Of a stretch of 35,280 bases of DNA, positions 4,611-10,159 are shown in pieces (the stretch's first letter is position 1; the number at the start of each line of letters is the position of its first letter). This DNA comes from Octopus sinensis (lineage: Eukaryota). The stretch is from the NCBI RefSeq assembly GCF_006345805.1, contig NW_021828050.1:1-35280 (forward strand). The letters run 5' to 3'. The position numbers and the translations under genes are program-made. A model generated the notes under the pieces. The model saw nothing but the letters and a program-made list of their open reading frames with translations, was not told the DNA's origin and did not search any database.

Positions 4611-4750
4611 TATATATATATATATATATATAATATATATATATATATTATATATATATATATATATATATATATATATATATATATATATATATATATA
4701 TATCTATATATATAATATATTATATATATATATATATATAATATATATAT
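4611..4750. repeat. (AT)n microsatellite at the outer edge of the left palindrome arm
   Basis: Direct reading. Confidence 0.95.
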
Positions 4751-4904
4751 CGAGGTCTGTGTTCAACTAGTACTCATTTTATCGACCCTAAAAGGGTGAA
4801 AGGCAAAGTTGACATCTGCGGAATTGGAACTAAGAATCTAAAGACGAACAAAATGCCGGCGTCCTAATGATTCTGTCAGCCCACAGCCAAAATATGCAAC
4901 TAAT

Positions 4905-5115
4905 ATTGGTTGCAAATTTTGGCACAAGGCCAAGAATTTGGTGGGAGGCTGCTAGTCGATTACATCGGCCTCAGTATTCAACTGGTACTTCATTCATGGG
5001 CCTCCGAAAGGATGAAAGGCAAGGTAGACCTCGGCGGAATTTGAACCCAAACAGACGAAATGCCGCTAAACATTTTGCCCGGCGTGATAACGTTTTTGCC
5101 AGCTCATCGCCTCAT
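4905..5115 (-). mobile_element. SINE family 2 copy inside the left arm (mirror copy ~9660-9875, + strand)
   Basis: GAAAGGCAAGGTAGACCTCGGCGGAATTTGAACCC...AAACATTTTGCCCGGCGTGATAACG...GCCAGCTCATCGCC. Confidence 0.85.
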
Positions 5116-5149
5116 ACGCTGCAACAAAGTAACTTTTTGATCTGAAAAA

Positions 5150-5335
5150 TTCACCGTAGCCTATACACCAAATCGGCTTTGTGAACAGTGAGCGTGTACC
5201 AAGTTCTCGTCACAAGGATTTGATTGACCTGAGACTATCGTAGAAGACACTTTCCCAAAGTGCCGTGCAGTGGGATTGAAATCTAAAATGCGAGGTTGCA
5301 AAATAAGCTTTTTAACAACATAGCCGCCTAAGGTT
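5150..5335 (-). mobile_element. SINE family 1 head and CORE region inside the left arm (mirror ~9445-9630)
   Basis: Reverse complement GGCTATGTTGTTAAAAAGC...TCAATCCCACTGCACGGCACTTTGGGAAAGTGTCTTCTACGATAG. Confidence 0.75.
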
Positions 5336-6703
5336 GATTAATGTGTGACGATTAATATGAGTCAATATGAAAGCTAGTAATAAATACAATCTAGGAGGTA
5401 ACTGTACTGAAGGGAAATGAGAAAAACATAGGGGACAGGTATGGATTTATGATTATTAACATTGCTTCGTGGTTTCCGATACAGTCCCATCGGGCGGCAT
5501 ATTATTCTGGTATACCTTCGGGATGATCGATATCATTCGAATGGAATTTGGTACAAAGTAACCGTTCGAGTCGAAAAAATTACCATTACATCCTGTCTTT
5601 ATTTCGTTCTCGAAATTGCTCATAAAGTATAGTTCTGTAATATTTTATAACTAAAGTTATATATTCTAATTTGCTTTCGGCTCCCAATACAAAAGTTTAT
5701 ACATACATACATACATACATACATAAATGCATACATAAATGCATGCATGCATACATACATACATACATACATAAATGCATACATACATACATACATATAT
5801 ACATACATATATACATACATAATTTATGTATGTGTGTATATATAGATGTATGTATATAAATATATATGTACACGACAGAAAGTTGAGCAGAGAATCTGTA
5901 TCAAATTTTTCCAAATGTATTCATATATATACACACACATATACATATAATGTATATATATATATATATATATATATATATATATATATATTATATATAT
6001 ATATATATATATATATATAATATGTTATTGGTAAGCTCATGTAAAGTGGTTTTAACAATTTAGTTGAACGCAATTTTTCGGAGTAAATTGATTTGGTAAA
6101 AATCTCGTTAGAACAAATCGAGAGAACATATATATCTACTCGAGTCTCCGCCCTAATATCGATTGGACTTTCCAACTATCCTCGTCGCTTATGTAAACGT
6201 AAATGCAACATCATGTTATATTTCGGGCAGCATTTTGTTTTTACTCGAAGTCATATCGTTTCGTTATTTATAACAGAAGTATCATTTTGAACGATATTGT
6301 TAAATGAACGACGTGCAAATTGCGCGCGTTAATACTTTCATGCATACAAGCAAATGCACACAAGTGCGCGCACACGCACACACACACACACATTATATTA
6401 TATGGGTATGTGTCATTCTATGCCCAGCGGAAAATACTTAAATTTCTGTAACGATAATAAAAAAAAATGAGTGAAAAACGAAGAAAATGACACTAACAAG
6501 AGATTAGGATTAAAGGAAGAAATATATATATATATATGTGTGTATATATATATATGTGTATATATATATATATATATATATATATATATATATATATATA
6601 TATATATATATATATATATATATATAATATATATATATATATATATATATATATATATATATATATATATATATATATATATATATATATATATGAACAG
6701 CAG

Positions 6704-6845
6704 TGGCTGTGTGGTAAATAGTTTCCTTCGCAACCACACGCTTCCGTGTTCAGTCACGCTGCATGATACTTCGAGTAAGCGTTTTTTACTGCAGCCTCAC
6801 GTAAACCTCTCATAAGGATTTGGTAGATGAAAAGAAACACAGACA
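6704..6845 (+). mobile_element. SINE family 1 head and CORE region spanning the inner breakpoint of the left arm
   Basis: GGCTGTGTGGTAAATAG...GTTCAGTCACGCTGC...GCAGCCTCACGTAAACCTCTCATAAGGATTTGGTAGATG. The mirror copy is cut at 8053. Confidence 0.75.
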
Positions 6846-7075
6846 CACACAGGGCCAACTATAGCCCTTTCGCGTCGGACCAGCCGTCACGATAACATCG
6901 CTTTCTTCGTAAACGCCTTATTTTTCAAATACGTTAGCTGAATTCAATTCGTCTCTGGTCGAATGACGCATGTTGTTATCTCCTGTTATTACTATTATTA
7001 TTATTATTATTATTATTATTATTACTATTATTATTATTATTGTTTTTTGTAATTATATTCGTATTATCTTGTAAA

Positions 7076-8052
7076 TGCGCATGCGCGAAAGTGTAACTAC
7101 GCGTGCGCGAAGGTATGACTGCGCATGCGCGAACGTGTGCGTGCGCATGCGCGATTGTGTGCGTGCGCATGCGCGAACGTGTGACTGCGCATGCGCGATC
7201 GTGTGACAGTGCATGCGCGAATATGTGACTGCGCATGCGCAAACGGGTGAGCATACGAGAACGTGTGCGAGCGCATGCGCGAACGTGTGACTGCGCATGC
7301 GCGAAAGTGTAACTGCGCATGCGCGAAAGTGTAACTGCGCATGCGCGAAAATGTGACTGCGCATGCGCGAACGTATGCGTGCGCATGCGCGAACATGTGA
7401 ATGCGCATGCACGAAAGTGTGACAGCGCATGTGCGAAAGTGTGACTGCGCATGCACGAACGTATAACTGCGCATGCGCGAACGTGTGCGTGCGCATGCGC
7501 GGACGTGTGCGTGCGCATGCGCGAACATGTGACTGCTGATGCGCGAAAGTGTGACTGCGCATGTGCGAACGTGTGACTGCGCATGCGCGAACATGAAACT
7601 GCGCATGCGCGAACGTGTGACTGCGCATGCGCGACAATGTGACTGCGCATGCGCGACAATGTGACTGCGCATGCGCGAACATGTCACTGCGCATGCGCGA
7701 ACGTGTGACTGCGCATGCGCTAACGTGTGCGTGCATATGCGCGAACATGTGACTGCGCAAACGCGAAGGAGTGACTGCGCATGTGCGAAAGTGTGACTGT
7801 GCATGCGTGAAAGTGTGACTGCACATGCGCGAACGTATGACTGCGCATGCGCGACATGTAACTGCGCATGCGCGAACGTGTGCGTGCGCATGCGCGAACG
7901 TGTGACTGCGCATGCGCGAAAATGTGACTGCTCATGTGCGAAAGTGTGACTGCGCATGCACGAACGTGTGACTGCGCATGCGCGAACGTGTGCGTGCGCA
8001 TGCGCTAACATGTGACTGCGCATGCGCGAACGTGTGGCTGAACATGCGCGAA
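7076..8052. repeat. 22-bp CpG-rich minisatellite, ~45 units, consensus CGTGTGACTGCGCATGCGCGAA
   Basis: Period read directly; about 28 units keep a perfect TGCGCATGCGC by manual count. Confidence 0.97.
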
Positions 8053-10028
8053 AGGCTGCAGTAAAAAACGCTTACTCGAAGTATCATGCAGCGTGACTGA
8101 ACACGGAAGCGTGTGGTTGTGAAGGAAGCTATTTACCACACAGCCACTGCTGTTTTGATATATATATATATATACACACATATAATATATATATTTCTTC
8201 CTTTAATCCTAATCTCTTGTTAGTGTCATTTTCTTCGTTTTTCACTCATTCTTTTTTATTATCGTTACAGAAATTTAAGTATTTTCCGCTGGGCATAGAA
8301 TGACACATACCCATATAATATAATGTGTGTGTGGTGTGTGTGCGTGTGCGCGCACTTGTGTGCATTTGCTTGTATGCATGAAGTATTAACGTAACGCGCG
8401 CAATTTGCACGTCGTTCATTTAACAATATCGTTCAAAATGATACTTCTGTTATAAATAACGAAACGATATGACTTCGAGTAAAAACAAAATGCTGCCCGA
8501 AATATAACATGATGTTGCATTTACGTTTACATAAGCGACGAGGATAGTTGGAAAGTCCAATCGATATTAGGGCGGAGACTCGAGTAGATATATATGTTCT
8601 CTCGATTTGTTCTAACGAGATTTTTACCAAATCAATTCACTCCGAAAAACTGCGTTCAACTAAATTGTTAAAACCACTTTACATGAGCTTACCAATAACA
8701 TATTATATATATATATATATATATATAATATATATATATAAAGATAGATAGATAGATAGATATAGATAAATATAGAGAGTATATAGTATATATATATATA
8801 TAATTATATATATATATACACAAATATAATATATATATATATATATATACATATATATGTATATGTGTGTGTGTATATATGAATACATTTGGAAAAATTT
8901 GATACAGATTCTCTGCTCAACTTTCTGTCATGTACATATATATTTATATACATACATCTATATATACACACATACATAAATTATGTATGTATGTATGTAT
9001 GCATGCATGCATTTATGTATGCATTTATGTATGTATGTATGTATGTATGTATGTATGTATGTATGTATGTATGTATAAACTTTTGTATTGGGAGCCGAAA
9101 GCAAATTAGAATATATAACTTTAGTTATAAAATATTACAGAACTATACTTTATGAGCAATTTCGGGAACGAAATAAAGACAGGATATATTGGTAATTTTT
9201 TCGACTCGAACGGTTACTGTGTTCCAAATACCATTCGTATTGATATCGATCATCCCGAAGGTATACCAGAATAATATGCCGCCCGATGGGACTGTATCGG
9301 GAACCATGAAGCAATGTTAATAATCATAAATCCATGCCTGTCCCCTATGTTTTTTCTAATTTCCCTTCAGTACAGTTACCTCCTAGCTTGTATTTATAAC
9401 TAGCTTTCATATTGACTCATATTAATCGTCACACATTAATCAACCTTAGGCGGCTATGTTGTTAAAAAGCTTATTTTGCAACCTCGCATTTTAGATTTCA
9501 ATCCCACTGCACAGCACTTTGGGAAAGTGTCTTCTACGATAGCCCCAGGTCAATCAAATCCTTGTGACGTGAATTTGATACACGCTCACAGTTCATAAAG
9601 CCGATTTGGTGTATAGGCCACGGTGAATTTTTCAGATCAAAAAGTTACTTTGTTGCAGCGTATGAGGCGATGAGCTGGCAAAAATGTTATCACGCCGGGC
9701 AAAATGCTTAGCGGCATTTCGTCTGTTTGGGTTCAAATTCCGCCGAGGTCTACCTTGCCTTTCATCCTTTCGGAGGCCCATGAATGAAGTACCAGTTGAA
9801 TACTGAGGCCGATGTAATCGACTAGCAGCCTCCCACCAAATTCTTGGCCTTGTACCAAAATTTGCAACCAATATCAGTTGCATATTTTGGCTGTGGGCTG
9901 ACAGAATCATTAGGACGCCGGCATTTTGTTCGTCTTTAGATTCTTAGTTCCAATTCCGCAGATGTCAACTTTGCCTTTCACCCTTCAAGGGTCGATAAAA
10001 TGAGTACCAGTTGAACACAGACCTCGAT
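8053..10028 (+). repeat. Right arm of the ~2 kb inverted duplication (partner 4749-6797)
   Basis: Collinear reverse complement of the left arm. Spot checks gave 2 mismatches in 80 bp (8621-8700) and 8 in 100 bp (9540-9640); microsatellite lengths differ between arms. Confidence 0.97.
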
Positions 10029-10159
10029 GTGAACGACTTAGAGCATACCCAAAATTGCTGGCCTTATGCCAAATTTTGAAACCAATGTGAGTTGCGTATA
10101 AGCCGACGATATTGTATTCTAATAATCGATCGATCGAAAAAATAATTTCATGTTAAGTA

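Follow-up and report, generated by a model that had tools for sequence, protein, structure and literature searches.

A 5.3 kb inverted repeat in Octopus sinensis as the probable scar of a small inversion with a one-sided inverted duplication

In the Drosophila melanogaster group, inverted duplications found at inversion breakpoints have been ascribed to staggered breaks: 17 of 29 inversions carried such duplications, which ranged from 46 bp to ≈1.9 kb and were one-sided in 12 cases, and the authors flagged the unwinding of long stretches of DNA as a difficulty (Ranz et al. 2007, PMC1885836). In humans, inversions flanked by copy number variants (CNVs), including the dupINV and INVdup classes, fit either microhomology-mediated break-induced replication (MMBIR)/fork stalling and template switching (FoSTeS) or several simultaneous breaks (Collins et al. 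2017, PMC5338099). Long inverted repeats, such as Alu inverted repeats in yeast (Ait Saada et al. 2023, PMC10164571), are described as sites that are fragile or prone to fold back. Here, we describe a 5.3 kb inverted repeat in a 35,280-nt stretch of DNA from Octopus sinensis (assembly GCF_006345805.1, contig NW_021828050.1, positions 1–35,280 of the forward strand), the whole of which is called the window. A preliminary, sequence-only reading had taken this repeat for a palindrome left by a staggered-break inversion, and the inverted duplications that it named as the signature of such breaks have a real precedent in the Drosophila work. Our analysis suggests that the structure is probably the few-million-year-old scar of a 1.25 kb micro-inversion with a one-sided 2 kb inverted duplication, belonging to the INVdup/dupINV class, in repeat-rich intergenic octopod DNA.

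A repeat finder delineated the inverted repeat as a left arm at 4749–6797 and a right arm at 8053–10028, which are reverse complements of each other and are separated by a 1255-nt spacer. The inverted segments were collinear, from 4749–5426 and 9351–10028 outermost to 6666–6797 and 8053–8184 innermost. When the entire window was compared with itself by BLAST, the structure at 4749–10028 was the only large inverted repeat present. Global alignment of the left arm (2049 nt) with the reverse complement of the right arm (1976 nt) gave 1824 matches, 63 substitutions and eight indel events, corresponding to 96.7% identity over the aligned columns. Judged by its length and similarity, a 2-kb repeat at 97% identity is far beyond chance. 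The two copies flank the single-copy segment 6798–8052 in opposite orientation, as expected of an inversion with inverted duplication. There is no N in the window and the structure lies in its interior, surrounded by A+T-rich DNA crowded with microsatellites (84 tandem-repeat rows) and dispersed short elements. Self-comparison and arm alignment, which had been put forward among the ways to check the 5.3 kb palindrome, thus bear it out. The coordinates first given for it were good to a few bases, except that the remainder of the right-hand short interspersed nuclear element (SINE) ends at ≈10099, rather than at 10085.

The arms turned out to be mosaics of four SINE copies, four microsatellites and ≈850 nt of single-copy DNA (Table 1), which agrees with the earlier description of them as ordinary DNA rather than transposon terminal inverted repeats. 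The spacer consists of a SINE tail, ≈135 nt of single-copy DNA, a (TTA)n run and a 22-bp minisatellite. The elements at the arm ends that serve as markers in the following are short, dispersed and multicopy, with a common core and a defined 5′ start, as is characteristic of SINEs. By BLAST and alignment, the window contains more than 25 copies or fragments of the outer-SINE family and three further ones of the inner-SINE family. No tRNA was called in these SINEs by ARAGORN or Rfam; the head is presumably derived from a tRNA, as in octopus SINEs. Over the whole window, there was no Rfam match at gathering score and no tRNA or tmRNA call. Members of the outer-SINE family also occur in head-to-tail arrays. 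The largest, at 21389–23970, has 14 units of 184 nt at ≈94% identity, with a higher-order period of 370 nt as well, and shorter arrays of 2–3 units are found at 18175–18729, 13235–13674 and 19027–19281. These arrays look like a SINE-derived satellite.

The most informative feature of the repeat is where its arms end. At the outer end, the right SINE copy (9889–≈10099) could be aligned with its complete neighbor at 9664–9888 well beyond the arm end at 10028, and had further alignment partners in the window copies at 13235, 18128 and 21389. The left copy of the same SINE breaks off at CTCGAT|ATATAT, passing straight into (AT)n. At the inner end, the situation is reversed. Here, the left copy is unbroken across 6797/6798 (…GCAGCCT|CACGTAAACC…GGATTTGGTAGATGAAAAG…) and stays in register past 6797 with family members at 9445–9620 and, on the reverse strand, at 1735–1560. 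The right copy turns into TTCGCGCATG, on the minisatellite side, exactly at the arm end. Each SINE is thus intact on one side, and on opposite sides of the structure, which identifies the joints at 6797/6798 and 10028/10029 as old and undisturbed and those at 4748/4749 and 8052/8053 as new. Comparison with further SINE copies from the window thus bears out the reciprocal truncation noticed in the sequence-only reading.

Continuity of this reciprocal kind is expected of an inversion with an inverted duplication. With A denoting the (AT)n run, C the spacer, D the arm and E the right flank, and with a prime marking inverted segments, the two old and two new joints are exactly those expected of a change from A-C-D-E to A-D′-C′-D-E. 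When the reversed spacer end is joined to 8053, the SINE is recreated (…GGTTTACGTG|AGGCTGCAG…), and the order A-C-D-E restores both SINEs in a single inversion-plus-inverted-duplication. The geometric argument of the earlier reading, in which an inversion duplicated the arm of an ancestor consisting of (AT)n, the reversed loop and one arm, is therefore sound, since both cut SINEs are restored. Its claim that copying alone is not enough also stands, because a plain copy-and-paste would need a further event to give the reciprocal pattern.

We also considered a history in two steps, in which the arm region was first duplicated in inverted orientation beside the minisatellite and an unrelated deletion or microsatellite loss at (AT)n then trimmed the left copy. 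An equivalent variant is a palindrome without a spacer that was stabilized by an off-center deletion. Unstable microsatellites abound in this DNA and have changed in length by 26–134 nt since the duplication, and the minisatellite breaks off partway through a unit. Events in stages could likewise account for the uneven divergence of the arms described below. However, two independent events would have to mimic by coincidence the exact reciprocal pattern of end points, and the window showed no trace of another spacer copy or of the absent portions of the SINEs. We therefore regard the two-step history as unlikely.

The new joints show little overlap between the sequences that they connect. At the outer joint, the AT at 4749–4750 can be assigned equally to the (AT)n run or to the left-arm SINE. 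At the inner joint, the AG at 8053–8054 is possibly common to both partners, since 4 of 25 minisatellite units have AG directly after GCGCGAA. Microhomology at each new joint is thus 0–2 nt, with no extended homology, which excludes homologous exchange between inverted repeats. End joining and microhomology-primed synthesis would both fit such joints. Within the window, no more arm homology was found in the flanks except for SINE cores and a dispersed 45-nt element (…GGAAAAATTTGAT[AG]CAGATTCTCTGCTCAAC…). This element is present in both arms (8888–8932 and 5878–5915) and again just beyond the right arm (10361–10407), at 94–97% identity, and is probably the end of a small dispersed element.

The joints also bear on whether a mobile element with long terminal inverted repeats, such as a foldback element or DNA transposon, or ectopic recombination between inverted SINEs could have produced the structure. 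With its long inverted arms enclosing a loop that holds a tandem array, the structure does resemble the former, and there are SINEs at both arm ends. A transposon or foldback origin was rejected: the arms are mosaic, their ends lie within SINE bodies, there is no target-site duplication and the window contains a single copy. The flanks are also different, with (AT)n on the left and the continuation of a SINE on the right. Ectopic recombination was likewise rejected, as the partners at the joints are (AT)n and a SINE interior in one case and the minisatellite and a SINE interior in the other, with only 2 nt in common. We consider an origin of either kind hardly credible.

The differences between the arms were then examined by type. 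Outside the microsatellites, 40 of 1603 aligned columns were substitutions (2.5%), or 36 of 1598 (2.25%) when a 4-nt block beside an indel was left out. Transitions outnumbered transversions by 26 to 14 in this sequence, and five were CpG transitions. There were only four small indels (1, 1, 3 and 4 nt), giving a ratio of substitutions to small indels of ≈10:1. All indels longer than 4 nt fell within microsatellites, namely (ATAC)n, two (AT)n runs and an (ATAG)n found only in the right arm. The latter, (ATAG)n/(GATA)n at 8745–8782, lies within a right-arm (AT)n run and is absent from the left arm, which indicates that a microsatellite was born or lost since the duplication. Uncorrected long-read errors or a fold-back read would be expected to leave differences that are rich in indels or close to zero in number. 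The observed pattern is that of germline-type divergence and not of read error.

These data do not bear equally on all forms of assembly artefact, in which the other haplotype, or a chimeric or fold-back read, would have been misjoined in inverted orientation at low-complexity repeats. The earlier reading had used the divergence of the arms as an argument against such an artefact. Against a read chimera the argument holds, as the differences are dominated by substitutions and biased toward transitions, but the divergence by itself is compatible with two haplotypes: at 2.3–2.5%, it is only about twice the heterozygosity reported for octopus (>1.1% genome-wide in O. vulgaris). Moreover, both new joints adjoin repeats that are unfriendly to assemblers, (AT)n being its own reverse complement, and the structure was read from assembled sequence. 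Fold-back and amplification chimeras would be expected to have near-identical arms, little or no spacer and error-type differences. The octopus repeat, by contrast, has a unique spacer of 1255 nt and a mutation-like divergence dominated by substitutions, unlike palindromic artefacts. At its new joints, the interior of a SINE meets (AT)n in one case and the minisatellite in the other, leaving no repeat common to the partners at which a misjoining could have occurred, and the structure lies within a window that has no N. Nor would an artefact be expected to show exact reciprocal continuity that restores two SINEs. Taken together, this makes an assembly artefact quite improbable.

The age of the event was estimated from the same divergence. 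All four SINE insertions are common to both arms and none is private to one of them, indicating that the duplication is younger than these four insertions and that no SINE has landed in either arm since. A published calibration for octopus repeats equates a Jukes–Cantor distance of 0.09 with 25 million years (My), and O. vulgaris and O. bimaculoides, which split 13–33 My ago, have diverged by 8%. From a pairwise divergence of 2.4%, the event would be about 3.5 My old by the repeat calibration and about 4–10 My old when scaled to the divergence between the two species.

We next considered what the break site may have looked like. The minisatellite forms an island of 55% G+C at 7076–8052 in surroundings of ≈33% G+C. 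Its unit, TGCGCATGCGCGAACGTGTGAC, holds a perfect 10-nt palindrome, GCGCATGCGC, and alternates between purines and pyrimidines nearly throughout. The (AT)n run is self-complementary. Both (AT)n and palindromic units of alternating purines and pyrimidines are prone to form unusual structures, which for the latter include Z-DNA. At its right end, at 8052, the array stops with the partial unit TGAACATGCGCGAA. The last full units before this point are not more degenerate than those in the interior, whereas some degeneracy is seen in the two leftmost units. Minus-strand open reading frames (ORFs) of 227–308 aa run through the minisatellite, but were rejected as genes: the unit has no stop in any of the three minus-strand frames, there was no Pfam match and no homologue, and a protein homology search with the 308-aa ORF found none.

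According to the sequence-only reading, the inversion had two fragile breakpoints, one at each repeat. This counted one site twice, as in the inferred ancestor the (AT)n run adjoins the minisatellite end and the two flank a single position of breakage or stalling. The remaining break points are separated by ≈2 kb and fall within the bodies of ordinary SINEs. The earlier prediction that the ancestor had (AT)n joined directly to TTCGCGCATGTT is possible but not required, since the minisatellite is cut mid-unit.

The ancestor would thus have consisted of the (AT)n run, possibly followed by some sequence now lost, the minisatellite and the rest of the spacer in reversed orientation, one arm, and the remainder of the outer SINE. 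In a single event, the DNA may have been opened, or a replication fork stalled, at the boundary between (AT)n and the minisatellite. The (AT)n end would then have become joined to a point within the outer SINE and the minisatellite end to a point within the inner SINE, 2 kb away, so that the 2 kb between the two points was doubled in opposite orientation and the spacer was flipped. Thereafter, the arms would have diverged by point mutation and changes in microsatellite length, to which gene conversion in the inner half may have added.

Two routes could lead to this outcome. In route (a), a staggered break, a double-strand break at A|C would be accompanied by two nicks, at C|D on one strand and at D|E on the other; the resulting 2 kb overhangs would be filled in, the C-D fragment would flip and the ends would be joined. 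In route (b), of the MMBIR/FoSTeS type, a nascent end at A|C would prime in the outer SINE on the opposite strand, D′ and C′ would be copied back to A|C, and synthesis would go on after re-priming in the inner SINE. Either route yields the exact product A-D′-C′-D-E, as the earlier reading had supposed when it offered a staggered break or a double template switch. The sequence does not tell the two routes apart. We lean slightly toward the replicative route (b), since the event is of kilobase scale, the overlaps are of 2 nt and both new joints involve one ancestral site.

Several observations weigh against the single-event history that we favor. First, the arms have not diverged evenly: the figure is 3.05% for 4749–5698 but 1.08% for the unique blocks further in (Fisher p = 0.009). 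In the inner single-copy sequence (6024–6521 compared with 8194–8699) the divergence is only ≈0.6%, about fivefold below the ≈3% of the outer part. Under a single event, this calls for an extra assumption, either gene conversion or variation in rate; arm-to-arm gene conversion in the inner half is possible and would be the simplest explanation. Second, the minisatellite was cut in mid-unit, with no degenerate edge, and not by a clean cut-and-paste at a natural end of the array. The cut was therefore internal to the array, and a stretch that once separated its present end from (AT)n may be missing. Third, a stagger of 2 kb exceeds every duplication described in Drosophila, where the maximum is ≈1.9 kb and the length of unwinding is already a stated difficulty. 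Finally, the ancestral order is a prediction, and the two new joints are those of one assembly. Weighing these points, we still consider the micro-inversion with a one-sided inverted duplication the probable origin of the structure.

A more far-reaching idea is that the junction between (AT)n and the palindromic minisatellite is a recurrent fragile site in octopus genomes that seeds kilobase-sized inversion-duplications by template switching. The resulting SINE-rich 2 kb palindromes would be partly homogenized by gene conversion and might give rise to hairpin RNA for the silencing of SINEs by small RNAs. We regard this as a long shot.

Table 1. Features of the inverted repeat and its flanks. 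Positions are those of the window; a dot indicates that no strand applies. TRF, Tandem Repeats Finder.
Feature	Position	Strand	Evidence
(AT)n run, 74 copies, left outside flank (A)	4608–4750	.	TRF, junction reading
Left arm (D′), 2049 nt	4749–6797	+	Repeat finder, BLAST, alignment
Outer SINE, left copy, first ≈140 nt only, lacking the ≈71-nt 3′ part	4749–4888	-	Alignment to right copy, neighbor SINE and three other window copies
Complete SINE of the outer-SINE family, left counterpart of 9664–9888	4889–5113	-	BLAST, alignment
tRNA-like SINE (second family), left counterpart of ≈9449–9610; boundaries approximate	5167–5328	-	Alignment, BLAST
(ATAC)n in left arm, 28 nt longer than right-arm 8982–9076	5699–5821	.	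TRF, alignment
(AT)n in left arm; right counterpart 8700–8864 is 80 nt longer, with extra (ATAG)n	5923–6023	.	TRF, alignment
Single-copy arm sequence, 3 substitutions in 493 nt	6024–6521	+	Arm alignment
(AT)n in left arm, 134 nt longer than right counterpart ≈8155–8190	6522–6694	.	TRF, alignment
Inner tRNA-like SINE, intact copy, spans 6797/6798; 3′ end approximate	6696–6850	+	Alignment with family members
Spacer (C′), 1255 nt, single copy	6798–8052	+	Alignment; no second window copy apart from (TTA)n
(TTA)n within spacer	6986–7041	.	TRF
22-bp minisatellite, 44.6 copies, unit TGCGCATGCGCGAACGTGTGAC	7076–8052	+	TRF
Right arm (D), 1976 nt	8053–10028	+	Repeat finder, BLAST, alignment
Inner tRNA-like SINE, right copy, cut after ...ACTGCAGCCT, lacking the ≈50-nt 3′ part	8053–8154	-	BLAST, alignment, junction reading
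Outer SINE, intact copy, spans 10028/10029 into right flank (E)	9889–10099	+	Alignment; BLAST of 9947–10094 against 9731–9880

Sequence searches were made with parts of the repeat and with other ORFs of the window. A protein homology search with a 65-aa ORF from the single-copy DNA of the arm found no homologue, and scans of metagenomes for a 32-mer of the arm and for a dimer of the minisatellite unit gave 0 matches. Exact-sequence look-ups returned no record for two 92-aa arm ORFs, for a gag-like ORF or for an ORF matching zf-RVT. The gag-like retroelement ORF, at 32271–32666, is the only informative protein fragment of the window, with 73% identity to an uncharacterized O. bimaculoides protein (LOC106879270) and 54% to an O. 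sinensis protein. Gag-like ORFs extend over 32271–33223, and the second of them bears a weak CCHC zinc knuckle. The zf-RVT ORF, at 15606–16052 and 148 aa long, matches the zinc-binding domain of reverse transcriptases (E = 1e-6), and by this match is a remnant of a retroelement of the long interspersed nuclear element (LINE) type. Elsewhere in the window, 19225–19779 consists of exactly two tandem copies of a 277-nt unit at 99% identity, and is much younger than the rest of the neighborhood. There are also very long pure microsatellites, (ATG)99 at 14543–14839, (AGAT)70 at 25025–25304 and (GATA)50 at 30091–30290, of which the last two are one repeat on opposite strands, 5 kb apart.

If confirmed, the locus would be a clean, self-polarizing case, in a cephalopod, of a small inversion that arose together with an inverted duplication, with two SINEs serving as built-in markers of old and new joints. 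Because the copies form a natural pair, the birth, growth and loss of microsatellites since a dated duplication can be read from them directly. The class of rearrangement is a known one, no gene is involved, and neither a new mechanism nor a new type of element is revealed. To a specialist, this is an unsurprising but tidy worked case of a known rearrangement in non-coding repeat DNA.

The closest resemblance is to the Drosophila inversions of Ranz et al. (PMC1885836). In both, an inverted copy of a once single-copy flank is found at both ends of the inverted segment, the duplication is one-sided here as in 12 of 18 cases there, the copies later diverge by substitutions and small indels, and the duplication itself polarizes the change. 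The octopus case differs in scale, with an inverted segment of 1.25 kb, whereas the Drosophila segments are chromosomal, and a duplication of 2.0 kb that is longer than the inverted segment and slightly above the ≈1.9 kb maximum. It also differs in its cephalopod host and in its ancestral order, which is here a prediction of the model. With the human dupINV and INVdup variants of Collins et al. (PMC5338099), it shares an inversion with one flanking duplication, and the short or absent microhomology at its joints would fit either of the routes proposed for them. The 2.0 kb duplication and 1.25 kb inverted segment are on the scale of the CNV-flanked inversions in that study; however, those variants come from human cohorts and long-insert libraries and are mostly much larger, whereas the octopus rearrangement is kilobase-scale, old (≈2.4%) and seen in one assembly. 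Like the yeast Alu inverted repeats (PMC10164571), the octopus locus has two closely similar inverted copies near each other on one chromosome, but that work concerns the consequences of inverted repeats that already exist. Judging from that study, the octopus repeat, with its 1.25 kb spacer and ≈3% divergence, should be comparatively stable in duplex DNA.

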